A stretch of DNA of 64,000 bases from Macrostomum hystrix (lineage: Eukaryota; Animalia; Platyhelminthes): NCBI GenBank assembly GCA_950097015.1, contig CATNEN010000014.1, forward strand, positions 1,426,001 to 1,490,000. Reading direction: 5' to 3'. Positions within the stretch are counted from its first letter, which is position 1; the number at the start of each line of letters is the position of its first letter. This document shows positions 17,765 through 59,800 of this stretch, in pieces. Under the pieces are notes generated by a model. That model made no database searches. It was not told the origin of the DNA and saw only the letters and a program-made list of their open reading frames with translations. Made by a program: the position numbers and the translations under genes.

Positions 17765-17979
17765 CCGGGTCGAAAGAAGTCAGAAGATTCAGAAGAATCT
17801 GAATCGCAGCGAGACGATCGACTAAGCGGAATAGGTTAGGCTAGGCTAGGCGAAGTGTCCCTGGTTCGACTCTGCACTGCGTTAAATCATTTAAATTAAT
17901 TGTTAGTCAGTAGTGATGGATGCGAAGCAATAAATTTTTATTTATTTTGAAAATAAAGGGAAAACTTTTAATTCACTTT

Positions 17980-18180
17980 TGCATAGCCAAACCAGTGTCT
18001 GAATCATTGCTAAACCAGAGTCTGAATCATGGCTAAACCAGAGTTTGAATCATGGCTAAACCAGAGTTTGAATCATGGCTAAACCAGAGTCTGAATCATG
18101 GCTAAACCAGAGTTTGAATCATGGCTAAACTAGAGTCTGAATCATGGCTAAACCAGAGTCTGAATCATGGCAAAACCAGA
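17980..18180. repeat. Short array of the 23-bp satellite monomer
   Basis: Same GAATCATGGCTAAACCAGAGTTT unit as 1-13113. Confidence 0.95.
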
Positions 18181-18845
18181 GTTGGTTCTTTGCTGCTGAC
18201 GGAACATCGGTTCTCTGCTGCTGGGGGGAAATTAGTTCTCTGCTGCTGGGGGGACACTGGTTCTCTGCTACTGGGGGGGGGAATTAGTTCACTGCTGCTG
18301 GGGGGGGAATTAGTTCTCTGCTGCTGAGGGGGGAATTAGTTCTTTGCTGCTGAGGGGGGAATTAGTTCTCTGCTGCTGAGGGGGGAATTAGTTCTCTGCT
18401 GCTGAGGGGGGAATTAGTTCTCTGCTGCTGGGGGGGGGGAATTAGTTCTCTGCTGCTGGGGGGCAATTAGTTCTCTGCTGCTGAGGGGGGAATTAGTTCC
18501 CTGCTGCTGAGGGGGGAATTAGTTCTCTGCTGCTAGGGGGACACTGGTTCTCTGCTACTGGGGGGGAGAATTAGTTCTCTGCTGCTGGGGGGGAATTAGT
18601 TCTCTGCTGCTGAGGGGGGAATTAGTTCTCTGCTGCTGAGAGAAGAATTAGTTCTCTGCTGCTGGGGGGGAATTAGTTCTCTGCTGCTGGGGGGGAATTA
18701 GTTCTCTGCTGCTGGGGGGGACACTGGTTCTCTGCTACTGGGGGGGGAATTAGTTCTCTGCTGCTGGGGGGACACTGGTTCTCTGCTACTGGGGGGGAAT
18801 TAGTTCTCTGCTGCTGGGGGGAATTAGTTCTCTGCTGCTGAGAGA
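18181..18845. repeat. G-run minisatellite, ~23-25 bp unit GGGGGGAATTAGTTCTCTGCTGCT
   Basis: Direct tandem periodicity with variable-length G tract. Confidence 0.95.
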
Positions 18846-19035
18846 GGAATCATCATCAACTGGGTGATCATCATTTACTGGGGGATCATTGTCAACTGGG
18901 GGAACATTGTCAACTGGGGGATCATTGTCAACTGGGGGATCATTGTCAACTGGGGGATCATTGTCAACTGGGGGATTATTGTCAACTGGGGGAGCATTGT
19001 CAACTGGGGGATCATTGTCAAGTAGTAGATCATTG
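18846..19035. repeat. 18-bp minisatellite GGGGGATCATTGTCAACT
   Basis: Tandem units; the same unit occurs at 39865-40620 and 59668-59706. Confidence 0.95.
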
Positions 19036-19128
19036 TAACTTTAAAAAAGCTGAAAATACAGCTGCTAAAAAGTATATACTAGACGAATTAAAAATATTTC
19101 TGCTCCCCGAAGGGGGAAAAACTTGTAG

Positions 19129-19932
19129 TTAACTCAAAAGTAAAAAACGCTATTGTTTTTTGTAAAATGGCACAACTTCTGGCTCTAGATTTCGTTAGAT
19201 CAGTCGTATAGACGTGAAAGTGATGTTCAAATGAGCGTCTAAGTGTCTACTTTCCAAATACGTGCCACTAAGACTGTTATATATATGCATGTGTCGCTAA
19301 TGCAAAATAACTCGTGTCTTGATGCTAAAATGATGCTAAAGAGGAAGTTTCTATTGCGAATTGCATACTAATATGCGGATGTCGCAGTTCATGCTAACAA
19401 CTTCTGAAACTCAGCGGTGTCTGCCTGTGTTGAGAGTGGCCCAGGTTCGAGTCATACTCGTACTTCTTATTTATATATGTACTTTTAATAAACTTTATTA
19501 TAAATAAATTTATTTATTTTGAAAAGATTTTACACTCGTATTTTTATAACTCCGTTTGCAGTATCTAAAACAACTATGTCATAGTGTATACTATACTATA
19601 TCATAATATACTATATAATTTGCTCAAATAATGCCTTACTGAGGTACATATTTTTCTTAACGTGACGTTGTCACTTCCTGCAGTAGGCGCTATGAAATTT
19701 AAATTAATGTAACGCTGTCCCATTTTTTGCAATTCCGTTTACTTCTTAGATTGCTACTGGAAGTAGACGTCAACGTACATTGAGTCCCTTGCGCCACCCG
19801 TGATGATTACTTTCTTCTCAGCCAATCGCTCATGCCAATCGTCCACGCTCATGTGCAAAGTTCAACTGGCTGTTCATTTTCTAGCCAATCCCCCACTGCA
19901 GATAAATTTTGTTAAAATTTGCGCTGGCCTAT
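19129..19932 (+). repeat. Dispersed repeat (~800 bp), inverted partner of 51340-52150
   Basis: For example CAGTCGTATAGACGTGAAAGTGATG (19201) vs CATCACTTTCACGTCTATACGACTG (52051); colinear along its whole length. Confidence 0.9.
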
Positions 19933-20325
19933 AATTTAAAGGCAAGGCATATTTCTTCAACCTTTCTTCAAGCCTTACTGGAAGCATTTGACATTCAATA
20001 TTTCAACATAAAAAAATATGTTGAGACTTCGTTCAATACTGTGGATCGGAATACTGTCTGCAAGTTAGTCAAGTCGTTCTCATTATTCTTCCATTTTCCA
20101 TTTTGAAATTAAGCTTTCATAAATTAAGCTTGCTAGCACGAAATTCAACATTTTAGTTTGCATCGCTGGAACCAACGCCATCAAGTGCTGGTCCTGCCAA
20201 CATTGCCTAAGAGCTGACCTTGACCGTAGAACCGGCACACTGGAAGGACTTTACTGCGTTGTGAGTCATGTATCACGAACCTAAAAACATGTGCTGCAGT
20301 GGACAAAAGCGCTATCTCATTCCAG

Positions 20326-20778
20326 TAGCTTTGCAGCCCTGAAGACTCTCAGTCCATAGCTTTGCAGCCCTGAAGACTCTCAGTCCATAGCTTTGCAGCC
20401 CTGAAGACTCTCATTCCAGTAGCTTTGCAGCCCTGAAGACTCTCAGTCCATAGCTTTGCAGTCCTGAAGACTCTCAGTCCATAGCTTTGCAGTCCTGAAG
20501 ACTCTCAGTCCATAGCTTTGCAGTCCTGAGGACTCTCAGTCCATAGCTTTGCAGCCCTGAAGACTCTCAGTCCATAGCTTTGCAGCCCTGAAGACTCTCA
20601 GTCCATAGCTTTGCAGTCCTGAAGACTCTCAGTCCATAGCTTTGCAGTCCTGAAGACTCTCAGTCCATAGCTTTGCAGCCCTGAAGACTCTCAGTCCATA
20701 GCTTTGCAGCCCTGAAGACCCTCAGTCCAGTAGGTTTGCGGTCCTGAAGAATCTCAGTTAAGTAGCTTCGCAGTCCTG
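20326..20778. repeat. 31-bp minisatellite TAGCTTTGCAGCCCTGAAGACTCTCAGTCCA (~14 copies)
   Basis: Period of 31 (20326, 20357, ...). Confidence 0.95.
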
Positions 20779-21584
20779 TCATTAGGATTCAAAAAAACAC
20801 AAAAAAACTAAACTTTTCATTATCTGGGGCTGAGGGAGAGATTTGTTCGCACGTTTGCCTCTCACACCAAGGTCCCTTGTGCTGGAATCTTTGGGAGGCC
20901 ATGCACATAGACTTGAGTCTGCCACCAAATGATATGATTTCTAATCCTTAAGTCTTCAAAAAAAACAGAAAGCGATTTTTAGAGGAAAAGTCGGTCGAAC
21001 CGCTGCTCACGTTTGCAAGCAGGAAAAGAATTATTACTGCTGCCAATCTGACCTGTGCAACACCGGCCATCAAGTGTCTGGTGCTCTGTTCCTTTTGATA
21101 GCTTCGGTTGTCCTGACCATCCTGCAGCAGTTTGTCAGCAGCTGGAGCCTGTAAAGCAATGTCCCATGGATGATTTTCTAGTTTCCGGGCTTCGATTTTA
21201 TTATACTCGTACAAATATCCGCGTGTTCTGTGCAGCCTAAAAAGAATGACTAAAACACCACAGTGCTTATGGAGTATAATCACGAATAAGATGAAACTGT
21301 TAAAAATGTTTGTTTTTGTAAGTCTAGCAAATTTAAGCCCATTTTTACTCTACAGCCCCGCAATTGTAATAGTTTTTTGTGTGCAATAAAAAACTTAGCA
21401 AACACTTAGCAAACACTAATTTTTTCCGACGTGTAAGTGTACCGGCAAATACAATTGAAATGGACAAATACTAATAGATTTCACGAGCAAAGGATTAAAG
21501 CGTTGCTAAAGTTAAATACGGCTCATAATTATTTTCCTGGCGAAACCGATAAGTACGCTCGTAGTAGCGAACGCTATGAAGCAG

Positions 21585-21862
21585 GTGAGTGCTGGTAGAG
21601 CGGTTAAAGTGTTTGCCTCTCGCACCAAGGTCCCTGAGCTCGATTCCGCAGCGAGGCCGCATTATTTTCAGACGCAGCCGCAAACAGAGGGCTTGGGGGG
21701 CTTGTCGTGCAATTTATGCCCTTGAGGACAAACCTCCAAGGCCTGACGATGAGAAAATCAGTGCTGATGTTCACACCTGTGAGAGCGTATTTGCCAACTT
21801 ACGGTATTTGTGTGCGTGTGTGCTCAGGAGTCAGCAAATAATTTGCCATACCCGCAGCCCTC
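21585..21862 (+). mobile_element. tRNA-derived SINE (tRNA-Val-like head)
   Basis: A-box-like GGTAGAGCGGTT, then GTTTGCCTCTCGCACCAAGGTCCC and B-box-like G.TCGATTCC, resembling tRNA-Val GGTTATCACGTTCGCCT...AGGTCCCCGGTTCGA. The body is shared with 55877-56235 (minus) and 60343-60450. Confidence 0.7.
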
Positions 21863-22083
21863 CTTTAGTTATAAATTATACCTGGTGACCAAAGCTAAGT
21901 TCACACAGCCTCCTCTAGTCTCCTTTCTTCGACCTTGCTGGGATTATTACCTGGCGGTTCAGTAATTCGTACTGATTGTTTTCTATTCTACCATTCTGCC
22001 ACTCAGCGGACGGGATCATTTAGAGTACATGCTGTCTAGTTTTTACCTACGCGAAAGGCGTTAGGTGTTGGTTTCTTACCATA

Positions 22084-22799
22084 AAACTGGGTACTTGGGA
22101 TCGGAACCTTATAGAGAGAATCAATTTTAGAATCTGCAAGTCGATTCTGCAAGTTAGTCCAAACACTGACAGCAATGGTGCCCGGTCCGAATTAGGAAGA
22201 CTACCACTATTATATAGTATTCAAAAAAGAAGCCTTCAATACTGGTCCTCAGTTCGGAGCCGACCAGACTCCATCGTCGCGAAATTGGTGGCAGATACAG
22301 AATACAGCGATGTTGGCATTGGGGAAAAATGAATAGTAAAGTAATTCGGAATTGTCAACAGACTAGAAAAACAAAGTCCATCAAAACGCACAGGGAGAAC
22401 TTTGAGTCAGAGTTCCGAAGGCACTGGACTCAGAGGATGGAAAATCAGCCAAGCTCAGCCACTTCTATTATGCGTTTAAGGAAGATTTCTCCCGAGAAAT
22501 GTACCTAACAATAATCTCTAACCCAGAACAAAGGCGCACAATTTCCTGATTTCGTCTAGAAAACCACAAACTGGCCTGTGAGACATTGTGCACTGTAAGA
22601 CCGAAAATCGCCTATGAAAACAGAACATGTCAAAAATGTAGAGTCGAGGTAGAGAACGAAACTCATATTCTCTTTAGATGCGGTTGGTCCGTTAATGTTC
22701 CAATTAAAAATAAATTATAGATACTGTTCGAAATTTCGAAAGCCTAACAGCTGATGACAAAATTGTACATTTAATAACACAGGAAAGCACAGAATTAAC
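22084..22799 (+). repeat. Left arm of a near-perfect inverted duplication of the LINE 3' region
   Basis: Reverse complement of 24245-24972, differing by a few substitutions and one 12-bp deletion. Confidence 0.95.
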
Positions 22800-22877
22800 T
22801 GTGACGTTGTCACTTGGCTTCACTTGGTTTCTCGCTTTTAAGTTTCTGTTAATTAAGTTTTTCTATTGTTACTGTCA

Positions 22878-23236
22878 AGTAGTATGCAAAGGGGGCTTTC
22901 TGGTGCAAAAATTATCGAAGCCTCAACAAATGTACAAACCATTACCTTTATTCTTCCCGTAGAGATCAGGAAAAAAGAGTCCCCGCCTTTTTTGTGAGTT
23001 GCATATCTGGGACAAAAAATTATCGCAGCCGCCATAATCAACAAACTATTCCCTAAGAGATCCGGAACTGAACCTACAAAAGGCGTGCCAAATCCATAAA
23101 ACTAACTCCCAGATTCCCAATCCCAAATCTCAAGATCCCAAACCTAGGGTGCTCATCCTCCGAAAAAAAATTATATTTTCATTAAAAATGCTCTCTCTAG
23201 ATTAAAATAGCCATGAGCCTAATTACAAGAGTAAGT
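22878..23236 (+). mobile_element. Short fragment homologous to the left end of the Polinton-like element, starting AGTAGT
   Basis: Colinear but diverged match to 25457-25985 (TTATCGCAGCC, CCCTAAGAGATC, CTCAAGATCCCAAACCTAGGGTGCTCATCCTC, CATGAGCCTAATTACAAGAGTAA). Confidence 0.7.
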
Positions 23237-24139
23237 AGATGCGATTGGTCCGTTAATGTTCCAATTAGAAATAAATTCATAGAGAAAGTGGCAGGTACTG
23301 TTCGAAATTTCGAAAGCCAAACAGCTGATGACAAAACTGTGTATTTAATGACACAGGAAAGCACAGACTTGCGACCATGTTCGGCCCTGACCTTAGCCAT
23401 TGTGTTGTATACCCTTTCTCCCCCGTTCGATGTGCTTACCCGTCGCTCGCCTTTTTGTTGGTACCCTTTCTTTTTTTGGAAGAGGCGAGTGTGACGTTGT
23501 CCCTTGGCTTCACTTGGTTTCTCGCTTTAAAGTTTCTGGTAATTAAGTTTTTCTATTGTTACTGTCAGTAGACGTCAACGTACATCGTGCAGCCCTAAGA
23601 TGTTTTCGCAAATGTATCAATGTTTTTTCCCTCAGCCAATGAGCGTGCGAGCTCTGTGTTGTTCAATTTATCGATCGCCCTTGTTTTCAGTCGGCCCAGC
23701 CTATGAAACTAGGGCCCCTGGGCCCGCTCGCGTTCCACCACCTCTCCGCTCGCGCTCCACCTGCCTTTGTCCACCGCGCTCTCCTTTTCAAACCGGCCCC
23801 TCCTCACCTCCGTTGCTATTATCGTCGCTGTCACTTCACTGTTACTTTCACAATGCCTTTGTACTGACTCCTCCGCCGTGTTACTTCACTTCTGTCATTA
23901 TTATTATTATTATTACGAGTATTATTATTGAGGTGCGCACGCCGATTGGGTGCTGATTTTTTTGTTTATTTTATGTTTGAGGTTAAACAAATCGATTTTT
24001 TAAAGAGAAGGCGATAGGAAAACAATAGCATGCGTAATTTTAGGTTAATAAAAGAAAAAAAACAAATTTTTGAAATAAACAAAGGCATTAAAACAAAAAA
24101 TGATATATTAAAATTTAAAGAGAAAATTAAAACTGACCG

Positions 24140-25450
24140 AAAGGAGAATAGCTATTGTGTTTTCGCATTCTAACTATGGGCCTCAGGGCAGTGGCTTTTT
24201 ATCTAGCTTTAATTATGCTTTCTATGAAGTCCACAAAACTTTCTGTTAATTCTGTGCTTTCCTGTGTTATTAAATGCACAACTTTGTCATCAGCTGTTAG
24301 GCTTTCGAAATTTCGAACAGTATCTGCCACTTTCTCTATGAATTTATTTCTAATTGGAACATTAACGGACCAATCGCATCTAAAGAGAATATGAGTTTCG
24401 TTCTCTACCTCGACTCTACATTTTGGACATGTTCTGTTTTCATAGGCGATTTTCGGTCTTACAGTGCACAATGTCTCACAGGCCAGTTTGTGGTTTTCTA
24501 GACGAAATCGGGACATTGTGCGCCTTTGTTCTGGGTTAGAGATTATTGTTAGGTACTTTTCTCGGGAGAAATCTTCCTTAAACGCATAATAGAAGTGGCT
24601 GAGCTTGGCTGATTTTCCATCCTCTGAGTCCAGTGCCTTCGGAACTCTGACTCAAAGTTCTCCCTGTGCGTTTTGATGGACTTTGTTTTTCTAGTCTGTT
24701 GACAATTCCGAATTACTTTACTATTCATTTTTCCCAATGCCAACATCGCTGTATTCTGTATCTGCCACCAATTTCGCGATGATGGAGTCTGGTCGGCTCC
24801 GAACTGAGGACCAGTATTGAAGGCTTCTTTTTTGAATACTATATAATAGTGGTAGTCTTCCTAATTCGGACCGGGCACCATTGCTGTCAGTGTTTGGACT
24901 AACTTGCAGAATCGACTTGCAGATTCTAAAATTAATTCTCTCTATAAGGTTCCGATCCCAAGTACCCAGTTTCCAGGAGACAAAAGCTCCCCAGGCCTCT
25001 GATGTATAGAGAACTTATAGCGAACAAGATGAGCTGTTAGTGTTTTGCTCTCTGAAATCCTGCCAACTTTCTCAGAAGCATTATTGGATGTCCACTTTTT
25101 TACCTAGTTCTATGGCATGAGTATCTATTGTTCCCTTCACGTTCATGTGAAACCAAAGATATTTCCACTGTCGTACGGGTTCAACAAGTTGCCATGTAAA
25201 AACAGTCTATGTGTTGCCCTTGAGTGGAGGTTGCAGCTCAGAAGCTTTGTATTCTGAATGTTTATTTCTAATTTATGAGTATTGCAAAAGTCTGCTACAT
25301 TGTAGAGGCCTTTTTGTAATTCTGTCAGGTCCTCACCAAAAATGACTAAATCGTCCCAATAAAGCAGGTAATTGTTTAATTCTTCATTTAATATAGAGGT
25401 ATGGCTTTGAAATGAGTATTTTAGAATTGTTCTTAGCGGGGTATAGGGAG
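24140..25450 (-). pseudogene. Non-LTR retrotransposon (CR1/L2-like) ORF2 3' fragment: RT core end plus C-terminal zinc-knuckle region
   Basis: Minus strand reads LLYWDDLVIFGEDLTELQKGLYNVADFCNTHKLEINIQNTK (degenerate YADD motif, ~25250-25370) and RFRLENHKLACET...RTCPKCRVEVENETHILFRC (24199-24516). Confidence 0.8.
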
Positions 25451-25921
25451 AATATCAGTGGAGATAGGGGGCTTCTAGAACAAAAATACTCGCAGCCTCC
25501 ATTATCCACAAACCATTACTTTTATTATTCCCGAAGAGATCAGGAAAAAAGGGTCCCCGCCTCTCTCTAAAAAACTCCGTCTCCATATTCTAAATTCTCT
25601 ACTTTTAATATTCCACAACAGTTTCTGAGTTGCATATCTAGGACAAAAATTATCGCAGCCTCCTTAATGCACAAACCATTACCTTTATTCTTCCCGAAGG
25701 AAAAAGGTTCCCCGCCAAAATAAATCTGTCTCTACTTTCCAGTTTGTAAACTTGGACAAAAAAAATTATCGCAGCCACTCCCTAAGAGATCATGCTCAAA
25801 ATAGCGAAGCTGCAAAAGGCGTGATAAGACAATCAAATTAGCACTAAAATCCCAATCCCCAAACTCAAGATCCCAAACCTAGGGTGCTCATCCTCCAAAA
25901 AAAATTATATTCTCATTAAAA

Positions 25922-26173
25922 ATGCTCCCAATCGTCTCTCCAGGATCTTATTACAAAAGTCATGAGCCTAATTACAAGAGTAAATACCGATGCAAACAAG
26001 AATGCAGCGAGTACATGAGAAAATATTGGCCCGGCGTGGATATCAATGTCCCTAATATTAATCAAGCTCTCCAAAGTCACTGGTTTCATAAGTATGGAGT
26101 AACCTACGTAAAGGACTATGACAGCTACTATAACTTTGCAGAAATCATTAGGCAGCTCACATTCTCTCAATGA
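25922..26173 (+). CDS. Small viral ORF of unknown function (83 aa, Tyr-rich)
   Basis: ATG in the same TTAAAAATG context as other viral genes; its stop overlaps the penton stop convergently. Confidence 0.4.
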   Translation: MLPIVSPGSYYKSHEPNYKSKYRCKQECSEYMRKYWPGVDINVPNINQALQSHWFHKYGVTYVKDYDSYYNFAEIIRQLTFSQ

Positions 26174-27014
26174 TCAACGTCAATACAAACTCTTCACCGA
26201 TGAAATCAACGCCAACACCATCTTCCGTCTCAAACTGCAGCACAATCTCGTGAATCTCCTTATTACTTAGCACAACTCTTTTCACTGGATTTGGTTTCTC
26301 TACCAGCATCTGTCCTCCAGGAACAGAGTTTGAGATGTTGTACAAAATATTCGTTCGCTTTCCCTTAAACACCCAATCAAGACTGAGATTACTTCTAATT
26401 AGAATATTCAAACCCTTTACAATGTCTGCGATATTGGGTGCTAAGAACAAGCCGCTTAGCAGGGTCCTCGAAACTGCCTCCGGTGATGCAGTCTGTGCTT
26501 CCGCCTTATAAACTTTCTTCTCGAATCCAAATTCCCTATACCATGTGTCATCTTTAAATTCAACCTCAGCATCTTTGTGAACTTGCATGACCACTCTCAT
26601 TACAGTGAGATCATAGGATAGTTTGACAGGGAACAGTTTCTTCTCTGGCTTACTCGCATTGGGTGTCTCAAAATGGCCTCTTTTAGTAAAAACACTTTCT
26701 AGAAAGTAATTGTAGGTATCCACACTTCTCGTGCTCACAGGGAATACCACAGCTTCTGCTGCTGCACCTTTCCATTTGTAATGAAACTTATTATTTGCTG
26801 CTGTCACATTGGGAACGTTTGACCAACCAGTGAAGTCGTTAAGATATACATGGTAATTAGCACTTGGATCCAGGCGAATCGCCTGCTCTAATTTTTCAAC
26901 AAATATCCCGTTTGCGTCATTAATTCGCCCAGCTATTGTAATAGGAATGCTCTCCTTAGAGTGAGAAATAATATTATTTAGTCTTTCAGCAATCGCTTCT
27001 ATTTTTTCACCCAC
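26157..27014 (-). CDS. Minor capsid protein (penton, single jelly roll), Polinton/adintovirus type
   Basis: N-terminal IRLDPSANYHVYL.DF..WSNVPNVTAANNKFHY and C-terminal GQMLVEKPNP...IHEI.LQFETEDG.GVDFIGEEFVLTLIIER match the Polinton penton pattern. The ORF is open but starts with GTG. Confidence 0.82.
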   Translation of the reverse strand: MGEKIEAIAERLNNIISHSKESIPITIAGRINDANGIFVEKLEQAIRLDPSANYHVYLNDFTGWSNVPNVTAANNKFHYKWKGAAAEAVVFPVSTRSVDTYNYFLESVFTKRGHFETPNASKPEKKLFPVKLSYDLTVMRVVMQVHKDAEVEFKDDTWYREFGFEKKVYKAEAQTASPEAVSRTLLSGLFLAPNIADIVKGLNILIRSNLSLDWVFKGKRTNILYNISNSVPGGQMLVEKPNPVKRVVLSNKEIHEIVLQFETEDGVGVDFIGEEFVLTLIIERM

Positions 27015-27029
27015 GAAAAAAATATTTAA

Positions 27030-38734: not shown

Positions 38735-39795
38735 ATAGCACACCAGAGTTTGAATCATGGCTGAACAAGAGTTTGAATCATGGCTAAACCAGAGTTTGAA
38801 TCATGGCAAAAACAGCGTCTGAATCATGGCTAAACCAGAGCTTGAATCATGGCTAAACCAGAGTTTGAATCATGGCTGAACCAGCGTTTGAATCATGGCT
38901 AAACCAGAGTTTGAATGAAGGCTAAACCCGAGTTTGAATCATGGCAAAACCAGAGTTTGAATCATGGCAAAACCAGAGTTTGAATCATGGCTAAACCAGA
39001 GTTTGAATCATGGCTAAACCAGCGTTTGAATCATGGCTAAACCAGAGTTTGAATCATGGCTAAACTAGAGTTTGAATCATGGCTAAAACAGAGTTTAAAT
39101 CATGGCAAAACCAGAGCTTGAATCATGGCAAAACCAGCGTTTGAATCAAGGCTAAACCAGAGCTTGAATCATGGCTAAACCAGAGCTTGAATCATGGCAA
39201 AATCAGAGTTTGAATCATGGCTAAACCAGAGTTTGAATCATGGCTAAACCAGAGTTTGAATCATGGCTAAACCAGAGCTTGAATCATGGCTAAACCAGAG
39301 TTTAAATCATGGCTAAACCAGAGTTTGAATCATGGCAAAACCCGAGTTTCAATCATGGCTAAACCAGAGTTTGAATCATGGCTAAACCAGAGTTTGAATC
39401 ATGGCTAAAACAGAGTTTGAATCATGGCAAAACCAGAGCTTGAATCATGGCTAAACCAGCGTTTGAATCATGGCTAAACCAGAGCTTGAATCATGGCTAA
39501 ACCAGAGTCTGAATCATGGCTAAACCAGAGTCTGAATCATGGCTAAACCAGCGTCTGAATCATGGCTAAAGCAGAGTTTGAATCATGGCTAAACTAGAGT
39601 CTGAATCATGGCTAAACCAGAGTTTGAATCATGGCTAAACCAGAGTTTGAATCATGGCTAAACCAGAGTTTGAATCATGGCTAAACCAGAGTTTGAATCA
39701 TGGCTAAACCAGAGTTTGAATCATGGCTAAACCAGAGTTTGAATCATGGCTAAACCAGAGTTTGAATCATGGCAAAACGAGAGTTTGAATCATAG
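38735..39795. repeat. 23-bp satellite array inside the Helitron (~46 copies)
   Basis: Same monomer as 1-13113. Confidence 0.96.
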
Positions 39796-39864
39796 CCCAC
39801 CAGGGTTTAAAACAGGGTGAAATCTGAGTTTGAATCTTGGCTTACCCAGCGTTTGAAAAATCAA

Positions 39865-40620
39865 CGTCAACTGGGGAGTCATCATCAAAATGGGGATCAT
39901 GGTAAACTGTGGGATAATCGTCAACTGGGGGATCATGGTAAACTTGGGGATCATTGTCAACTGGGTGATCATCATCAACTGGGGATCATCATCAACTGGG
40001 GGATCATCATCAACTGGGGGTTCATTGTCAACTGTGGGATCATTGTCAACCGGCGGGATCATTGTCAACTGGGGGATCATTGTCAACTGGGGGATCATTG
40101 TCAACTGGGGGGTAATGGTCAACTAGGGGATAATTGTCAACTGGGGAATCATCATCAAATGGGGGATCATGGTCAACTTGGGGATCATTGTCAACTGGAT
40201 GATCATCATAAACTGGGGGATCATTGTCAATTGGGGGAACATTGTCAACTGGACGAACATTGTTAACTGGGGATCATCATCAATGGGGAGTCATCATCAA
40301 CTGGGGGATCATTGTGAACTGGAGGATCTTTGTCAACTGGGGGATCATTGTCAACTGGGGGATCATTGTCAACTGGGGGATCATTGTCAACTGGGAGATC
40401 ATCATCAACGGGGGGATCATTGTCAACTGGGGGATCATTGTCAACTGGGGGATCATTGTCAACTGGGGGATCATTGTCAACTGGGGGATCATCATCAACT
40501 GGGGGATCATTGTCAACTGGGGGAACATTGTCAACTGGGGGTTCATTGTCAACTGGGGGATCATTGTCAACTGGGGGATAATTGTCAACTAGGGGATCAT
40601 CATCAACTAGGGGATCATTG
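39865..40620. repeat. 18-bp minisatellite GGGGGATCATTGTCAACT inside the Helitron
   Basis: Tandem periodicity; explains the repetitive ORFs listed at 39790-40639. Confidence 0.96.
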
Positions 40621-41105
40621 TTGCTATAAAAGTCTGTAAATTCAGCTGCTAAAAAGTATATACTAGACGAATTAAAAGTATTTCTGCTCCCCGAAGGGGG
40701 GCAAAACTTGCTAGTAGAGTACTATACGTATTAGAGATTGAACAAGGGGGTGACATCTCAGATACACTGAAGGCTTGCTAAAGTACCACTTGGCAACGTC
40801 AGCCAACTGTAACTTCACCTTAGTAATTGATTTTAACTGACGAGCACTTGACAAGTAAACTTCAAAGTCAGTGTTCTTTGTTTTCTGTATTTCATTTTCT
40901 AAATCGCTAATAAGACTTCTGCAGATAGCCAGCAGATAAGGAAGAGAATAACTATATGGAGCCCCGATCAGTTCAAGATCTTCATAGTGCTCTAGACATC
41001 CAATGATTTCTCTGACAGTTATGTAAGGGTTTGTGTGATGCATTTCTATTTCTTATATTAAAAAATTAATTTTTTCAGACTAAAAATGATTTCTTTCTAA
41101 CTCTT

Positions 41106-43997: not shown

Positions 43998-44014
43998 TTA
44001 TTAAATTGCTTTTA

Positions 44015-44200
44015 GATTTAAAGTGCGCAGGATTTCTTAGTATATATTTTATTAAATCTCAAAACATCCGATATTTGAGAAACTAAGGTGCGTAGCTGTA
44101 AAAACCGGTCTGACCAAAGATGCTATATAATTATAGAAGAACAATTCTATATTGTAAATTATGTAGCATAGTATAGCATGTCCTTATTCCTCAGCCCTCA
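44015..44200 (+). repeat. Dispersed repeat, inverted partner of ~52550-52790, leading into a 23-bp minisatellite
   Basis: ATATTTGAGAAACT...TATGTAGCATAGTATA...TCCTTATTCCTCAGCCCTC matches the reverse complement at 52570-52790. Confidence 0.8.
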
Positions 44201-44736: not shown

Positions 44737-44742
44737 GATTCC

Positions 44743-47700: not shown

Positions 47701-47905
47701 CAAGAGAAATGTTGATTGTAAAGCTTTGCTTCGGCTTCAGAATGGCGAACATGTTGGGGCCGCCAACCTCCCACACATAATACGAGGAGAGGAGGATCTT
47801 GCCAGTCTGTGAATAACTGAATCGCACGTTCTCGGTGTCAACATCCTTGGACACTACAAAGCTGGCGCATGCCAGCCAGAGCAACAGAATGCTTTGGGAA
47901 AGCAT
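44743..47905 (-). CDS. Host gene: Ig-domain type I membrane protein, 3 exons (47905-45851, 45763-45503, 44880-44743), ~817 aa
   Basis: Signal peptide MLSQSILLLWLACASFVVS, Ig-like motif (C...W...HSGQYTC), phase-0 GT/AG introns of 87 and 622 nt that keep the frame, and a last exon encoding TM IVLAAALLLLMITALLLLLLC plus a short tail. No stops or frameshifts. Confidence 0.8.
44925..45441. repeat. 30-bp intronic minisatellite GGTGAATATAGAACTGGAAGTGGGATATCA (~17 copies)
   Basis: Period of 30; lies inside predicted intron 2. Confidence 0.95.
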
Positions 47906-49349: not shown

Positions 49350-49650
49350 AGAGAAGAAAAGCAGAGAGAGAGAAGTGATAGATAATGAAGAAGACAGAAA
49401 TAACAGAGAGAGTAGAAAAGAAGAAAAAACAAAAAGCAAAAGAGAAGGAGAAAAAGCTGAGTAGAAGAGACAGAGAATAAAACAGCGAGAGAGAAGAAGA
49501 GAAGAAAAGCAGAGGGAGATAATTGAGAAGAATAATTAAATGAAGGAAAACAGAAAAATAGTAGAAGAGAAAGAAAGTGAAAGTAAAGGAGAAGAAAGTC
49601 AAAGAGTTAAGGAGAATAAAAAGAAAGAAGTAAAAAAGAAGAGTTTTTGC
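49350..49650. repeat. Purine-rich (AG) low-complexity tract
   Basis: Almost entirely A and G on the plus strand. Confidence 0.85.
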
Positions 49651-49659
49651 CATCCACAT

Positions 49660-51339: not shown

Positions 51340-52150
51340 AATAGGCCGGCGCAAATTTTAACAAAATGTATACTGCAGTGCGGGATTGGCTAGAAAATGA
51401 ACAGCCAGTTGACCTTTGCAGATGAGCGTGGACGATTGGCATGAGCGATTGGCTGAGAAGAAAGTAATCATCACGGGTGGCGCAAGGGACTCAATGTACG
51501 TTGACGACTACTTCCAGTAGCAATCTAAGAAGTAAACGGAATTGCAAAAATTGGGACAGCGTTACATTAATTTAAATTTCATAGCGCCTACTGCAGGAAG
51601 TGACAACGTCACGTTAAGAAAAATATGTACCTCAGTTAAGGCATTATTTGAGTAAATTATATAGTGTATTATGATATAGTATAGTATACACTATGACAAA
51701 GTTGTTTAAGATACTTCAAGCGGAGTTATAAAAATACGAGCGTAATATCTTTTCAAAATAAATAAATTTATTTATAATAAAGCTTATAAATAAATAAATA
51801 TATAAATAAGACGTACGAGTATGACTCGAACCTGGGCCACTCTCAACACAGGCAGACACCGCTGAGTTTCAGAACTTGTTAGCATTAACTGCGACATCCG
51901 CATATTAGTATGCGATTCTCAATAGAAACTTCCTCTTTAGCATCAATTTAGCATCAAGACACGAGTTATTTTGCATTGGCGCCACACGTATATATCTAAC
52001 AGCCTTAGTGGCACGTTTTTGGAAATTAGACACTTAAACGCACATTTAAACATCACTTTCACGTCTATACGACTGATCTAACGAAATCTAGAGCCAGAAG
52101 TTGTGCCATTTTACTAAAAACTATACCGTTTTTTTCTGTAGAGTTAAGTA
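51340..52150 (-). repeat. Dispersed repeat, inverted partner of 19129-19932
   Basis: Colinear reverse-complement match. Confidence 0.9.
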
Positions 52151-53010
52151 AAGTTGTATTTGTCCTAGCACTTTCACGTACGTGATAGTTCAGCTATTTG
52201 AGCATCGAATAAAAAAATCTCAAAAATCGTTGCGCAAAAAAATAATTCGACTTTAAAACTTCTACCCCCTGTTTTGTACATTTTATATGTCACATGTGAA
52301 AAGTACCTGTTAGAAATGGTCATCTACTCAAGTGCTTGGCGTCGTTGGAAAGACCATTTGACACCAAACTCAAAATAATTGGGTCCCTTTTCTATAAAAT
52401 CATAACACAACGTCTGTCTGAGAAGAGAGACCCTCGCCTCAAATTTATCTGGATTTTGAGTCGCTGCTCAGCCACCGTTCGATTTGAAGACTAAAAAGTG
52501 TACTCGATTGTGCTACCATGTGTTTGACACAAGGCTATGAAGGTCCCATGTCAGCAGCTGAGGGAGTGACTGAACGAGGGCTGAGGAATATGGACATACT
52601 ATGCTACATAAGGATATACTATGCTACATAACTTACTAGATATAATTGTTTTTCTATAATTTTAGCAACCGTGGTCAGTTTGGTGTTTTTATTCCAGCAA
52701 CGCGCTTCAGTTTCTCAAATATCAGACGTTTTGTGATTCAATAGAGTATATACTAAGCAATCGTCCGCACTTTATTTTGAAAAGCACTTTAAAAAGGAAA
52801 ATTGTGTTCGCTACTGGTACTACGCGTTCGCCGGTGGAGATGCACTGTCTATGGCACAAACGCTGCAGAATTTATGCTCTTAGCCTCGGCAGGCAGTCGT
52901 ACAAACTACTTTTGTTGCACTCGCTCTGAAGTTTCGTTTGTATGCGCAGATCAGTAACTCTGCGAACATGGAATAGTTTTTTCTGTCCCTAGACAGTGCC
53001 TGAGATATGG

Positions 53011-55037
53011 CACTAGACCTCAGATCTGACACTAGAACTCAGATCTGGCACTAGACCTCAGATCTGGCACTAGAACTCAGATCTGGCACTAGACCTCAGA
53101 TCTGACACTAGAACTCAGATCTGGCACTAGACCTCAGATCTGACACTAGAACTCAGATCTGGCACTAGAACTCAGATCTGGCACTAGACCTCAGATCTGA
53201 CACTAGAACTCAGATCTGACACTAGAACTCAGATCTGGCACTAGAACTCAGATCTGGCACTAGACCTCAGATCTGACACTAGAACTCAGATCTGGCACTA
53301 GACCTCAGATCTGACACTAGAACTCAGATCTGGCACTAGACCTCAGATCTGGCACTAGACCTCAGATCTGGCACTAGACCTCAGATCTGACACTAGACCT
53401 CAGATCTGGCACTAGAACTCAGATCTGGCACTAGACCTCAGATCTGACACTAGAACTCAGATCTGGCACTAGACCTCAGATCTGGCACTAGAACTCAGAT
53501 CTGACACTAGAACTCAGATCTGGCACTAGAACTCAGATCTGACACTAGACCTCAGATCTGACACTAGACCTCAGATCTGGCACTAGAACTCAGATCTGAC
53601 ACTAGAACTCAGATCTGACACTAGAACTCAGATCTGACACTAGAACTCAGATCTGGCACTAGAACTCAGATCTGACACTAGAACTCAGATCTGGCACTAG
53701 AACTCAGATCTGACACTAGACCTCAGATCTGACACTAGACCTCAGATCTGACACTAGAACTCAGATCTGACACTAGAACTCAGATCTGACACTAGACCTC
53801 AGATCTGACACTAGAACTCAGATCTGACACTAGACCTCAGATCTGACACTAGAACTCAGATCTGACACTAGACCTCAGATCTGACACTAGAACTCAGATC
53901 TGACACTAGAACTCAGATCTGACACTAGACCTCAGATCTGGCACTAGAACTCAGATCTGGCACTAGACCTCAGATCTGGCACTAGAACTCAGATCTGACA
54001 CTAGACCTCAGATCTGACACTAGAACTCAGATCTGACACTAGAACTCAGATCTGACACTAGACCTCAGATCTGACACTAGAACTCAGATCTGACACTAGA
54101 CCTCAGATCTGACACTAGAACTCAGATCTGACACTAGAACTCAGATCTGACACTAGAACTCAGATCTGACACTAGACCTCAGATCTGACACTAGAACTCA
54201 GATCTGACACTAGAACTCAGATCTGACACTAGAACTCAGATCTGACACTAGACCTCAGATCTGACACTAGAACTCAGATCTGACACTAGACCTCAGATCT
54301 GACACTAGAACTCAGATCTGACACTAGAACTCAGATCTGACACTAGACCTCAGATCTGACACTAGAACTCAGATCTGACACTAGAACTCAGATCTGACAC
54401 TAGAACTCAGATCTGACACTAGAACTCAGATCTGGCACTAGAACTCAGATCTGGCACTAGACCTCAGATCTGGCACTAGAACTCAGATCTGACACTAGAC
54501 CTCAGATCTGACACTAGAACTCAGATCTGACACTAGAACTCAGATCTGACACTAGACCTCAGATCTGACACTAGAACTCAGATCTGACACTAGACCTCAG
54601 ATCTGACACTAGAACTCAGATCTGACACTAGAACTCAGATCTGACACTAGAACTCAGATCTGACACTAGACCTCAGATCTGACACTAGAACTCAGATCTG
54701 ACACTAGAACTCAGATCTGACACTAGAACTCAGATCTGACACTAGACCTCAGATCTGACACTAGAACTCAGATCTGACACTAGACCTCAGATCTGACACT
54801 AGAACTCAGATCTGACACTAGAACTCAGATCTGACACTAGACCTCAGATCTGACACTAGAACTCAGATCTGACACTAGAACTCAGATCTGACACTAGAAC
54901 TCAGATCTGACACTAGAACTCAGATCTGACACTAGACCTCAGATCTGACACTAGACCTCAGATCTGGCACTAGAACTCAGATCTGGCACTAGACCTCAGA
55001 TCTGGCACTAGAACTCAGATCTGGCACTAGACCTCAG
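53011..55037. repeat. 19-bp minisatellite CACTAGAMCTCAGATCTGR (~107 copies)
   Basis: Exact 19-bp period; variation is essentially confined to two positions. Confidence 0.98.
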
Positions 55038-55194
55038 ACGGAAATTACCGTTCACTAATTACTTGTCAAGCCTGTAGTTTGTAGATTGAGGGCTTCCTGG
55101 ACACTTATGTTTTCGCATACCTGAGCAACCGAACACTTTTCCTGGAAGTCTCGGCCAAGTTCACACCGCATGACAAGTGCTGCGAGGGTCGCAA

Positions 55195-55875
55195 ACCCTA
55201 CGATAATTCATGCTTTATGCAACTCCGTGGATAAATCATGCTTCCTCCTCGATAGTTCATGCATCCCTCTTGATAATTCATGCTTTCCCCCGATAATTCA
55301 TGCGACCCTCTCAATTATTCATGCTTATCCCTCGATACTTTTGGTAACCGCTTTGATAGTTTATGACTTCCCCTCAATAATTCATGCTTCCCATAGATAA
55401 CTTCTGCTATTCAGTCGATAATTCATGCTTCCCATAGATAACTTCTGCTATTCAGTCGATAATTCATGCTTCCCATAGATAATTTCTGCTATTCAGTCGA
55501 TAATTCATGCTTCGTCATGGTCCCTCGACAAAGCATGCTACCCTCTCGACAAATCTTGCTACCCCTCGATAATTTATGCTACCCCCACTATAAATCATGC
55601 TACTCTCAACATTTGATGAAGTTCCCTCAAAAGTACTTGCTGTTCCCTCGAAAATGCATGAAACAACCTTAAGTAATCAAGCTATTCTTGATTACTAGGG
55701 GGAAGTAAATAACGCTCTGAAGCCCTGACAAACATGCAAAAATCATTTAAATTTTCAATCACAATTTTATACTTATCTTTTCTTGAGATATCTCCTTAAT
55801 AAATCGTGCTGTCTCCCGGATAATTCATGCTTCCCCTTAATAGTTCATGCTAACCCCCTTGATAATTCATACCTT
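55195..55875. repeat. Degenerate tandem repeat with core GATAATTCATGCT
   Basis: The core recurs more than 10 times with irregular spacing, including a 37-bp triplication at ~55376-55515. Confidence 0.75.
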
Positions 55876-55876
55876 A

Positions 55877-56545
55877 ATAATAATTGCAGGAGGGCTGTGG
55901 GCTATTGCACATCATCTGGTGACACTAGACCCTCAGCCAGCGGGAGGCAATTCTGCCCATTTCGCTGACTCCTGAGCACAAACGCACACAGATACTGTAC
56001 ACAGGCATACACTCACACAGGTGTGTACATCTGCCCTGACTGTCTCATCGCCAGGTAGTGTACATGCAATTAACTGTGCCTTGGAGGTTGGCCCTCAAGG
56101 GCGTAAATTGCACGACAAGCCCCCAAGCCTTCTCTCCGCGGCTGCGCCCCAAATAAATGTGGCCTCGCCGTGGAATCGAACTTAGGGACCGTGGTGCAAG
56201 AGGCAAACGCGATAACCGCTCTTCCACCGACCCCCGTTTACTTAAGTAAGTTGAGACGGTCTATTTGAGTAGGCTGAGACTCTTCATTTCAGTATTTCCC
56301 TGCAATCTTTATGAATATTAGGTTTTATTCATTCAGTGATCCCCTGAGGGGCACTGCCATTTTGTGAGCCGATGGTCACCAGGGGCTAGCGAAATGTGCG
56401 GTTCCTCCGCCTCCTCGCTGCGTCTGCCGGTCGGGCGCACCCTGCAGCTCAGTCAAGAACGGCAGGCTGCGACTAACTCTCTAGCTGACGGACAGCTGAC
56501 TAAACTATAAGTTTCAGTAAACATTTAATTTTTAATTAATTAAAA
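55877..56545 (-). mobile_element. tRNA-Val-like SINE (55877-56235) plus ~300-bp upstream flank shared with 60070-60460
   Basis: Reverse complement of the SINE at 21585-21862; the flank matches 60070-60340 in inverted orientation. Confidence 0.75.
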
Positions 56546-58016
56546 ACAGGAATCCGTATATGAAAAGACAAAAAACAGTCACGCAGCTGGAGTTCGCGTA
56601 AAAGGCTGCATTCCTTATCTCAATTTCTATTTACAAAAGAGAATGCTGCATTGAAAGGCACAGTTTTTAGAAAGATATTTTTGCATGCGTTAAGCAAAAA
56701 TCAATATAAAATTATTTTACTCGAATAGCTGGTGGAGTCTTCAACAGAAATTTAGATAGAAGTCGAAGTGAAAAAAACTTACCGAAGTCAGTTTGCGCAT
56801 TCAACAGGACTAGGCAGCCCACACATGTAAAATTCGGAATTCCTTGCCTTTAATTTCTGTTTACAAAATAATGCTGCTTTTTATGAATAGTGAAAAGTGA
56901 AAAAAAAAGAAATTTTCTTGCATACGTTAAGCAAATAATCAAGCAACCAAGCAACATAGGGATTCCTACCCAAAACAATTTTTAGGAAACTTTAAAACCT
57001 GTCTGGTACTTATGCCAGCTCTACTCAGCACTCTCTTTTCACTTCTCTCGCGTGTCGGAAAAGACAAGAAACATTTTGAGAGGAGAGTGGTGGGCGCGAA
57101 TAGGAATAATATCCCTCGCGGACGGTAGAGAAGGCAATGGATGGTCTTGAATTGGGTGGGCGAACTTTGATGGCATATTAGCACGGTGTTTTAAATTGCG
57201 CTTCACGGTAAAATCTGAATTGAAAATGCAGTCATAATTTTCGGGTAACTTTTTCCGCAAATTTCCGAAAAGTTTTGTTTCTTCAGGGCTTTCAATTTTA
57301 AGAAAGAGAACGAAATTCGCTCGTTATTTTTTAACAGTCGGCACCAGCTCAAAATATCAAATATCAAAATATAACCAGCTCACAACAAAGAGCAGTGTTG
57401 TCTATGGAGAAACTTAACTTGTGGCTACACAAAAATCAGTGCTGGAATGCTGTTGCGGCATTCCTGCACCCCATGGAACGAATGTATTTAATCATAAAGA
57501 AACATAGAACAAGAATAAAATTGCAAAGTGACGATAAATTCAAAGTAGTAACGCTCAGGTCACTTGAGTCTGCATGAAGTCAATATTGGAGCGTAGTAGA
57601 CTGCATCACATATCACTCAAATGCAAACTCCACTACGTTGCGTTCGCCGATAGCTATACGATCTTCATGCGCTTTGTTAAGGCAGTAGAAACCGTCACAG
57701 TGGATCAGTGGATGCGCCGGCGCTTGGCGCTGTTGTAATGACAGGCTGGTTACCAGTAGAAACCGCGGTGTCAAAGCAGTCTCACTGCCACCGAACTACA
57801 CGTTGTCGCTGTCAGTCAGGGCACGTGAACAACCGTTGTGAAACCGCTTACAGAGCAGTAGTTCAAGTGAATTAGTGGAGGTGCTATGGTGGAGTTAATA
57901 ATTTGTTAGGCGAGCGTATTGATAAGAAACTTCTTAACTAGATGTGCATAGCTGTGTCAACACCACAGGCGAAAGTGCGAATTTATAAATAGATTACATC
58001 ACACAGCTTTTCTCGC

Positions 58017-58061
<45 letters not shown>

Positions 58062-58194
58062 ATTTGAACACGTATAATGTGCATGGCAGACTTCAATTCA
58101 ATGATAAATTGCTAAATGCCAGCGAGACATATACTCCTTCCTTAATTACTACAACTTATATAAACCATCCAATTTTGTTTCAATTTCAATCGGT

Positions 58195-58835
58195 AAATGC
58201 GTCCAAAAGTTTTCTTAATGTGTCCAACCATTTTCTTTATGTGTCCAAAGGTTTTCTAAATGTGTCCAAAGATTTTCTAAATGTGGCCAACAGTTTTATA
58301 AACGTGTCCAACAGTTTTATAAATGTGACCAAAAGTTTTATAAATGTGACCAAAAGTCTTATAAATGTGACCAACAGTTTTATAAATGTGACCAAAAGTT
58401 TTATAAATGTGACCAACAGTTTTATAAATGTGCCCAACAGTTTTATAAATGTGACCAAAAGTTTTATAAATGTGTCCAACAGTTTTATAAATGTGACCAA
58501 CAGTTTTATAAATGTGACCAACAGTTTTATAAATGTGACCAACAGTTTTATAAATGTGTCCAACAGTTTTATAAATGTGTCCAACAGTTTTATAAATGTG
58601 ACCAACAGTTTTATAAATTTGTCCAACAGTTTTATAAATGTGTCCAACAGTTTTATAAATGTGTCCAAGAGTTTTAAAAATGTCTCCAACAGTTTTATAA
58701 ATTTGTCCAACAGTTTTATAAATGTGTCCAACAGTTTTATAAATGTGTCCAACAGTTTTGTAAATGTGTCCAACAGTTTTATAAATGTGTCCAAAAGTTT
58801 TCCTAAATGTGTCCAAAAGTTTTCCTAAATGTGTC
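58195..58835. repeat. 21-bp minisatellite ATAAATGTGTCCAACAGTTTT (~30 copies)
   Basis: Period of 21; gives spurious heptad ORFs on both strands. Confidence 0.96.
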
Positions 58836-59194
58836 TATCAGTTGCCTGCTATAGGGGTGTCATAAAATAGCTGCTAAATAGCTGTCATTAGTTATCTGCC
58901 ACTAAACGGGGTCATAGGTTACCTGCTAAATGTGTCATTAGTTCTTTGCTAAAGGAAGACGTTCGTTGCCTGCTTCGGGGCATTTATTACCTACTGAGAG
59001 ACATTCATTACCTGCTGAGGGACTTTGGTCGACATCCTTGCGTAGCAGTTTGTGTAAATCTTTCTCAATTGTTCCTGGCGTACTTATTTTTATTTTTCTT
59101 ATTTTAAATTTAAATACTTAAAACGTGTTATTGGAAAATTACCTTTCTGGTAAAAGAGGACATTCTTCTCTGCTGAAGGGGATCATCGGCCACC

Positions 59195-59425
59195 TGCTTA
59201 AGGCATTGGTTACCTGCTTAACGCTTTAGTAACCTGCTTAAGGCTTTGATTACCTGCTTAAGGCATTGGTTACCTGCTTAACGCTTTGGTAACCTGCTTA
59301 AGGCTTTGATTACCTGCTTAAGGCATTGGTTACCTGCTTAACGCTTTGGTAACCTGCTTAAGGCTTTGTTTACCCGCTTAAGGCATTGGTAACCTGCTTA
59401 AAGCATTGGTTACCTGGTTAAGGCA
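59195..59425. repeat. 20-bp minisatellite AGGCATTGGTTACCTGCTTA with a 3-unit (60-bp) higher-order period
   Basis: The 60-bp blocks starting at 59221, 59281 and 59341 are nearly identical. Confidence 0.92.
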
Positions 59426-59800
59426 TTCGTTCTCTGCTAAAGGGAGACATTGATTGAATCCTGCGAAGGGATATTGGTTGACTGCTGGGAGATATTTGTT
59501 GCCTGCTGGGCCGAGTAAAATCGTTTCTCTGCTATATGGGGGCAATGGTTTCCTGTAAAAAAGGGACAAAAAATTTGTGCTGCCGGTTTCGTAGCCTGGT
59601 ATTATGGTGGTTCTCTTCTGTTTGGAGGTAATTGGTTACTTGCTGCTGGGGGAACAATGGGGAATCGATGTCAACTGGGGGATCATTGTCAACTGGGGGA
59701 TCATTGTAGCTTAAAAAAGCTGAAAATTCAGCTGCTAAAAAATAAATACTAGACGAATTAAAGATATTCTTGCTCCCCGAAAGGGGGCCAAACTTGCTAG

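Follow-up and report, generated by a model that had tools for sequence, protein, structure and literature searches.

The 64,000-nt stretch of Macrostomum hystrix contig CATNEN010000014.1 (C14) analysed here, referred to as the window, raises the question of where its satellite DNA came from: it opens with a long array of a 23-bp unit, and further along it holds three segments that end alike and carry short tandem arrays of their own, two of them built from that same 23-mer. An earlier reading of the stretch (the original prediction) had taken the three segments for Helitrons, i.e. members of one rolling-circle transposon family in which different monomers are amplified in different copies, and the long array for a runaway expansion from such a copy. 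The best explanation overall, and one we consider very probable, is that a Helitron family inserting between A and T spreads array modules, and that the giant array most likely grew out of one of these modules. The elements in the window are as follows, with internal arrays called by Tandem Repeats Finder (TRF).

17829-19128, forward strand: Helitron copy 1, 5'-truncated (TRF, 3' alignment, start of homology); remnant of the 5' body 17829-17981, 23-mer x8.7 at 17982-18182, 26-mer x24.5 at 18210-18840, 18-mer x10.3 at 18856-19040, hairpin 19102-19116, end CTTGTAG.
38152-40714, forward strand: Helitron copy 2, a complete non-autonomous 'A' element of 2563 bp (TRF, termini, empty sites); 5' terminus TCCACTATACTAAAAATG and 5' body 38152-38730, 23-mer x49 at 38731-39857, 18-mer x42 at 39866-40621, hairpin 40686-40700, CTAG 40711-40714.
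57942-59800, forward strand: Helitron copy 3, without the canonical 5' terminus (TRF, 3' alignment, genomic homology); 21-mer x31 at 58194-58843, degenerate units of 20-25 nt, 20-mer x12.6 at 59192-59443, 18-mer x2.8 at 59658-59707, hairpin 59772-59786, CTAG 59797-59800.
59801-60032, forward strand: 5' part of a fourth element (TCTAATATACTAAAAAT...), joined to copy 3 by a CTAG-TC junction and followed by 25-mer-like units.

The span originally given for copy 2 is that of a complete element, whereas the segment at 17829-19128 turned out to be 5'-truncated and the third segment to start at 57942 and not near 57982; the array units of 23, ~24, 18, 21 and 20 bp mostly hold, except that the '~24' unit of copy 1 is a 26-mer according to TRF. 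Homology of copy 1 to all other family members starts at 17828/17829, about 640 nt inside the full element of its own subtype, and its 5' part has therefore been lost; to its left lies debris of transposable elements (TEs), including a 198-bp long terminal repeat (LTR), a Tc1-like element with 43-nt terminal inverted repeats (TIRs) and BEL/Pao fragments. Copy 3 is homologous to more than 20 genomic copies from 57942 onwards, immediately past a CTAG; its first ~100 nt resemble an internal piece of another subtype's 5' body, and a TC...ATACTAAA 5' terminus was not found for it. The conserved 5' end of the family, TC(C/T)A(C/A)TATACTAAAAAT... and then ATTTTCTCCCGAAC(C/G)GCTCAACCGATTTTCA, is present at 38152 and again at 59801, so that a fourth element starts straight after copy 3, across the CTAG-TC junction.

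What ties the three segments together is their 3' end, and the common hairpin and CTAG-type terminus attributed to them are confirmed. With up to two mismatches allowed, the word GCTCCCCGAAGGGGG occurs in the window at 19102, 40686 and 59772 only, against a chance expectation of 0.06, and the alignment of the last ~95 nt of the three segments gives 86% column identity. They end in CTTGTAG (19128), CTTGCTAG (40714) and CTTGCTAG (59800), with T as the next base in each case; the CTAG at 40711-40714 and 59797-59800 conforms to the Helitron consensus CTRR, while copy 1 has the variant TGTAG. A hairpin, CTCCCC-GAA-GGGGGG, lies 11 nt upstream of the CTAG, and folding predicts that its stem forms, with minimum free energies of -4.5 to -6.6 kcal/mol in the three window copies and -8.7 kcal/mol in an autonomous element described below; the z-scores are modest because the stretches are short. 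A generic scan of the window for a hairpin followed by CTRR returned no more convincing 3' ends, and the same scan missed the three known ones because their stem contains a T-G pair.

Canonical Helitrons, as restated in PMC4778049, start with TC, end with CTRR some 10-12 nt behind a short GC-rich hairpin, insert between A and T, lack TIRs, and have autonomous members with a Rep (HUH) domain fused to a PIF1-type helicase. The family described here is a canonical Helitron: it has the 5' TC, the hairpin and CTAG at the 3' end, and insertion between A and T without target site duplication (TSD). Copy 2 is flanked by ...GTGCA on the left and TAGAGT... on the right, and a search of the genome with 300 nt of each flank found the two flanks exactly adjacent at two paralogous empty sites (C1:11584731/11584730 and C11:2296377/2296376); copy 2 therefore inserted between A and T with neither duplication nor loss. 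The 5' TC is seen in TCCACTATACTAAAAATG at 38152 and TCTAATATACTAAAAAT at 59801, and the 5' ends sampled in the genome all begin with TC, except for five identical junctions at a locus on contig C2, where the first T is missing, and one junction at L001, which has AG. When the first 30 nt (TCCACTATACTAAAAATGAAATGCTTGCTT) are read directly against the last 30 nt in reverse complement (CTAGCAAGTTTTGCCCCCCTTCGGGGAGCA), no common register is seen, i.e. there are no TIRs. A first look at the genome gives at least 610 candidate 3' ends and at least 965 candidate 5' ends.

The bases next to the termini give a more mixed picture. The exact 3' word, from the hairpin to the CTAG, occurs 412 times genome-wide and is followed by T in 410 cases and by another base in 2. 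The exact 5' 23-mer occurs 234 times, and only 55 of these follow an A, which weighs against insertion between A and T, as does the ~24% that follow C (~12%) or T (~13%); another ~52% follow G, the last base of the CTAG of a preceding element in trains of Helitrons (the shares of G, C and T were estimated from 100 listed of the remaining 179). In a letter-level sample, the 5' ends preceded by C or T mostly proved to have extra TCC or CCT stubs ahead of the true start. A Helentron or DINE-1-like reading was considered as well and dropped, as the empty sites are of the A-T type and not the T-T type; inverted subtermini, a Helentron feature, were not seen by reading, and no endonuclease family, such as the apurinic-like domain of Helentron partners, was found among the eight pieces of the autonomous element's open reading frames (ORFs of at least 70 aa). 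The assignment to a rolling-circle family is therefore borne out by the termini, the two empty sites, the hundreds of copies, and the RepHel partners to which we now turn.

The first of these autonomous elements (L065:2661 to L066:4040, 11.4 kb) starts 22.7 kb past the end of the window, and its first 1340 bp are 100% identical to adjacent non-autonomous copies of 4.9 kb, which we call B. It has arrays of 21-, 25-, 23- and 18-mer-like units upstream of a spliced RepHel-OTU gene, for which searches with the individual exons, not with a joined protein, gave matches in separate exons to Helitron_like_N (2.3e-51), PIF1 (2.2e-35 and 1.1e-18), Pif1_2B, UvrD_C_2 and OTU; its own 3' end, GTGCCCCCCAACGGGGGGCTAAATTGCTAT, is built like that of the family. 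The genome holds 63 matches to the Rep domain. Four A-type 5' ends have a Rep exon 2.8-6 kb downstream of them in the same orientation, and one of these four loci was read from end to end. The second autonomous element, C1:3511283-3531437, starts after an A with TCCACTATACTAAAAATGAAATG and has both the exact A-type 5' 24-mer and the exact 3' 20-mer. Its 5' body is 92% identical to that of copy 2 and is followed by 32 units of the 23-mer and then by the RepHel gene, which has 71-77% DNA identity to that of the first element; past the gene come a 31-mer x68, 22-, 44- and 88-mers, the 23-mer x50 and a 31-mer x30, before the element ends in an A-type 3' terminus and a T. Motif scans found no internal Helitron boundary within these coordinates. 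An autonomous RepHel partner with the same ends, which the original prediction had called for, is therefore found at C1:3511283-3531437, and on its sequence family A has an autonomous relative that shares both its ends and already bears the 23-mer. Since autonomous RepHel elements carry the same arrays, the repeats belong to the transposon lineage.

In both lineages, the first RepHel exon was also seen to contain a 69-bp coding tandem repeat, x6 at L065:5807-6454 and x13.4 at L067:2014-2938; its match to STPR is faint (E 0.01) and below the cut-off.

How the arrays differ from copy to copy was examined in a sample that is biased towards copy 2, as it consists of the 40 best matches to that copy's ends that were scored, and 60 loci of 3 kb (30 around 5' ends and 30 around 3' ends); the genome census is based on these 3-kb loci, on coordinates and on pattern counts. 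All 30 sampled 5' ends have a 5' body of ~580 bp followed by a 23-mer array, and all 30 sampled 3' ends are preceded by an 18-mer array, with widely different numbers of units. The B elements of 4.9 kb, which form a train downstream of the window, have a different 5' body and the same 3' end as A; their arrays run in the order 21-mer x5, 23/25-mer x28, 23-mer x16 and 18-mer x136. Module order accordingly goes by subfamily, being 23, 18 in A and 21, 25, 23, 18 in B and in the autonomous relative of B. Pairwise comparison of unit consensus sequences against shuffles identifies the copy 1 26-mer with the 23/25-mer of B (z 24) and the copy 3 21-mer with its counterpart of equal length in B (z 18), and it relates the 18-mer to a 22-mer from an autonomous element (z 5.4); in the same comparison the 23-mer has no significant likeness to the other Helitron modules, and the 20-mer was seen in copy 3 only. 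The arrays thus form a small repertoire of modules (21-, 25/26-, 23- and 18-mers) shared between subfamilies, and no copy invents monomers of its own; copies differ in the number of units and in which modules are retained. The proposal that different monomers are amplified in each copy is wrong as stated, and in its place we find recurring modules inherited by subfamily. That the family is a vehicle for satellite arrays does hold, as all sampled copies carry tandem arrays, and the family takes them along wherever it inserts.

The number of units can differ widely between copies that are otherwise alike. Where the 79-nt 3' termini are 100% identical, complete 18-mer arrays still number 23, 37, 38, 47, 48, 56, 58, 67, 75, 76 and 79 units, and more than 82 in many other copies, while 23-mer arrays range from 7 to ~150 units. 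An element at C1:2772588 does not carry a giant (10-kb) array: probes show that its 23-mer stops near 2776600 and is followed by at least 1.5 kb of 18-mer.

These data bear on whether the family generates array diversity at all, or is a vehicle but no nursery, so that all differences are inherited subfamily differences from several masters, with no appreciable change of the arrays after insertion. The fixed module orders within subfamilies (23, 18 in A; 21, 25, 23, 18 in B) and the near-identity of adjacent train members (99.6-100% among three neighbouring 4.9-kb B copies) are what such inheritance would give. We nonetheless regard it as unlikely, in view of the 18-mer arrays of 23 to more than 82 units behind identical 79-nt termini, of the block duplications that took place within the giant array (see below), and of the C2 locus, where a 2-kb unit consisting of a 5' end and the 23-mer was amplified locally. 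Instead, we suggest that spread and change go together. In the autonomous masters, short tandem-repeat fields flank the spliced RepHel-OTU gene on one side or on both, and the non-autonomous copies are internal-deletion derivatives that keep both termini and the repeat fields. Each transposition therefore plants ready-made arrays at a new site between A and T, subfamilies retaining different subsets and orders of a few modules (21-, 25/26-, 23- and 18-mer). The unit numbers probably change fast thereafter, or already during insertion, by slippage or unequal exchange, as the range of 18-mers (23 to more than 83 units) behind identical 79-nt termini and that of the 23-mer (7 to ~150 units) imply.

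The array at the start of the window and its right-hand neighbour are the following.

1-13114, forward strand: right-hand 13.1 kb of the array of the 23-mer CATGGCTAAACCAGAGTTTGAAT (TRF, unit tiling).
13116-13315, forward strand: 198-bp LTR of an LTR-retrotransposon family of ~6.3 kb (genomic hits to query 22/24-221, paired ~6.3 kb apart).

The unit of this array is indeed the exact 23-mer of copies 1 and 2, as had been noted; its true size is not just over 13 kb but 23.9 kb (C14:1415229-1439114, i.e. L062:9229 to window position 13114), as another 10.8 kb lies upstream of the window. In a tiling with a local-minimum tiler, its ~1030 units have a mean of 2.1 mismatches per 23 to the consensus (~9% divergence) and include many distinct variants, and identical variant units recur at lags of 134, 311, 177 and 82 units; the array therefore grew in place by block duplications. 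The length is that of the assembly, and long low-complexity arrays are prone to assembly errors, so that collapse or over-expansion might be suspected; we think it highly unlikely that the 24 kb are such an artefact, since the unit divergence of ~9%, the many variants and the non-periodic block duplications provide anchors for an assembler.

On its left, the giant array borders on a truncated reverse transcriptase fragment of a long interspersed nuclear element (LINE), where homology to ~20 LINE copies stops at L062:9219-9221, mid-gene. On its right, the LTR at 13116 cuts it mid-unit, and nested TE debris continues to 17828. Within this debris, we also observed an element of ~1.3 kb (13520-14851) whose 43-nt inverted ends have 93% complementarity; it is probably a Tc1/mariner-type transposon. 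The idea that the LINE is broken by the giant array and resumes after the 3' end of copy 1 was rejected, because the flank in question is the inverted terminal repeat of a 33-kb element (see below).

Did this array grow out of a Helitron? Several observations weigh against it: Helitron sequence was found at neither edge of the array, and the array is more diverged (2.1 mismatches per unit) than most in-register Helitron arrays (~1.0-1.9), which also fits an older independent satellite. The first unit of the array, CATACTACACCAGAGTCTGAAT (22 nt; CATACTACACC...), resembles the odd first unit, CATAGCACACCAGAGTTTGAAT (CATAGCACACC...), with which arrays of the copy 2 type begin; this is weak support, because 25-41 of the ~1030 units fit the first-unit signature equally well (chance ~2-4%). 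The 23-mer is present in copies 1 and 2, in 30/30 A copies of the sample, in the B copies and in the two autonomous elements; like a TE-borne satellite, it is found within mobile elements and also as a long array that lacks element ends. Of the 9417 exact 35-mer hits genome-wide, just 50 fall in the giant array, and young Helitron arrays have ~6-25 such hits per kb; in a bulk estimate, most 23-mer DNA can be accounted for inside several hundred or more Helitrons. Among the matches listed, the first three 23-mer arrays by position on contig C1 are all tied to Helitron ends, one to both ends, one to an exact 3' end only, and one to an exact 5' end, with an 18-mer array following.

Helitrons capture host DNA, and the relationship might run in the reverse direction: the 23-mer would first have been a host satellite, of which an ancestral Helitron captured a piece and has only carried it since, and the 24-kb array would be a remnant or a relative of the source satellite. 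The lack of Helitron ends around the giant array, its higher divergence compared to most Helitron-internal arrays, and the dissimilarity of the 23-mer to the other modules, some of which resemble one another, all agree with this. On the other hand, the 23-mer is already in both autonomous lineages examined, all three listed C1 arrays are tied to Helitron ends, the giant array accounts for only 50/9417 of the exact 35-mer hits, and its first unit resembles a Helitron array start. On balance, capture of a host satellite strikes us as improbable, and so, to the same degree, does the giant array as a leftover or relative of its source. Descent of the giant array from a Helitron copy is plausible, and we infer that it was most likely a single internal array, which would have grown by block duplication and then have lost both Helitron flanks to rearrangement and TE insertion. 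The evidence does not establish the stronger claim that such a copy underwent a runaway expansion, given the missing Helitron ends and the weak first-unit match.

The flanks of the insertions point to a target preference. In 19 unique 3' flanks of solo insertions (taken from L001-L030, window 40715-40740 and L068:4939), CTAA starts 6-11 nt past the insertion T in 13, compared to 2.7% of 1682 control A-T sites (binomial p ~8e-17), and in most of the other solo flanks a close variant is seen (e.g. CTTAAA, CTATAA or CTGAAA). The motif, T-N(4-9)-CTAA with mostly N6-7, resembles the element's own 5' end, TC-N(6-7)-ACTAAA; the family seems to prefer targets that look like the start of the element itself. 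Resident 5' ends would then be preferred targets, and this would explain the CTAG-TC trains. A second family, of ~330 bp, has a similar 5' end, TCT(A/T)ATATACTAAAAATGAAAATCTTG, and a different 3' hairpin, GGCTACCCAGAGGGTAGCGAAGGCAGCTAG, and was seen in trains mixed with A copies (L001, L026, L035, L049, L050, L054).

The locus C2:7176379-7190463 (reverse strand; L035, L039, L045-L048) contains six A-type 5' ends ~2 kb apart and a single exact 3' end downstream. At five of the six 5' ends, an identical junction, GAATCATG/GCCACTATAC, which lacks the first T, connects the end to the 23-mer array before it. The locus is a 2-kb higher-order repeat of the 5' part of the Helitron plus satellite. Such a structure, with its one identical junction and single 3' end, together with the ~52% of exact 5' ends that abut a CTAG, would be expected if arrays and trains grew mainly by faulty rolling-circle replication, i.e. 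missed termination, and not by chromosomal unequal crossing-over or slippage. However, the five identical junctions fit a single event followed by unequal crossing-over equally well; the trains mix families, with the 330-bp elements and their other hairpin beside A copies, and hence are not the read-through of one template; and the resemblance of the solo-site motif to the element's own 5' end points to targeted insertion beside resident copies. We therefore find it rather doubtful that replication errors are the main source of growth.

One may go further and consider the arrays as working transposon parts instead of passive cargo, since both autonomous lineages examined keep arrays beside RepHel and every sampled derivative keeps arrays beside its ends (the 18-mer next to the 3' terminus in the 30 copies found by copy 2's 3' end). 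The arrays could be platforms for protein binding, one candidate partner being the N-terminal repeat region of RepHel, which is weakly STPR-like, or they could help as promoters or in termination. Taken jointly with a self-mimicking target choice that builds CTAG-TC trains, we consider this a long shot.

The original prediction saw here a candidate for an undescribed system. This we cannot uphold, as the concept has been published for both Helentrons and Helitrons (PMC7492417, PMC12628747): the spreading and seeding of satellite DNA by such elements is already described in oysters, flies and plants. Among the closest cases is the non-autonomous Helentron group Cg_HINE of the Pacific oyster (Vojvoda Zeljko et al. 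2020, PMC7492417; followed up in a satellitome study, PMC8268682), in which end sequences occur in modular combinations with one or two central satellite-like arrays and tandem repeats are spread in this way. In the family described here, too, conserved end modules enclose satellite-like arrays in the centre, flanks and repeats combine in a modular way, and repeats found within elements also exist as free satellite. It differs in that a canonical Helitron, and not a Helentron, does the carrying (insertion between A and T, TC...CTAG, and a RepHel with no endonuclease seen), in its units of 18-26 bp as opposed to the ~170 bp of the classical oyster satellite Cg170, in having up to four modules per element, and in that autonomous masters with the same arrays were found. 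DINE-1 elements are derived from Helentrons, with subterminal inverted repeats and insertion between two Ts (Thomas et al. 2014, PMC4067079), and the central tandem-repeat block of DINE-TR1 expanded to satellite-like arrays in D. virilis (Dias et al. 2015, as summarised in PMC12628747). Like these, the present family consists of very abundant, non-autonomous rolling-circle elements whose central block of tandem repeats varies; unlike DINE-1, it has the features of a canonical Helitron.

A 2025 review calls the internal arrays of Helitrons and Helentrons 'a common example' of satellite birth and lists TE-incorporated, one-sided or intermediate, and standalone forms of TE-borne satellites (PMC12628747). 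It also relates that arrays with many 5' ends and one 3' end, for which missed termination was proposed, are known from plant centromeric Helitrons (Xiong, Dooner and Du 2016, as reported in that review). As far as the summary there goes, the head-to-tail CTAG-TC junctions and the many-5'-one-3' locus C2:7176379-7190463 resemble these truncated-Helitron arrays of plants, as well as trains in bats and maize; the repeat unit in the plants, by the same account, is the Helitron itself, whereas here there are short-unit minisatellites inside each element in addition to the trains. With Helraiser and Helibat (Grabundzija et al. 2016, PMC4778049), the family has in common the 5' TC, the 3' CTAG, the hairpin near the 3' end and the A-T target, and also an AT-rich target preference that is strongest on the side of the 3' end, as reported for Helraiser (PMC4778049). 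Helraiser differs in that no internal satellites are reported for it, and the downstream preference seen here looks like a defined motif, T-N(4-9)-CTAA. For Macrostomum, a limited literature search found no paper describing Helitron-borne satellites.

What sets the present family apart is the canonical Helitron as carrier, the short units, and the identified masters with arrays on both sides of the gene. No new class of system is opened by this, the idea being in the literature already; what we have is a well-bounded case of a canonical Helitron, and not a Helentron, distributing several minisatellites through an animal genome, and this genome is well suited to measuring the pace at which TE-borne arrays change and pass into free satellites. 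The most useful by-product is the self-mimicking target motif, which offers a testable reason for Helitron trains.

Some further features of the window surround the Helitrons. Genes of BEL/Pao type with Peptidase_A17, RVT_1, Integrase_H2C2, DUF5641 and DUF1759 lie on the reverse strand at 33260-37270 and 61682-62329. An element of ~33 kb (19129-52147) has inverted terminal repeats of ~350 bp that start with TTAACTC, with TTAA at both outer edges, and the six copies of its TIR in the genome are all on contig C14; Helitron copy 2 sits inside this element, and the 3' end of copy 1 abuts its left repeat. Within ~1.37-1.67 Mb of C14, parts of the window, among them the 33-kb element's TIR and the surroundings of copy 3, recur at a spacing of ~80-105 kb with 92-98% identity, which suggests large local segmental duplications.

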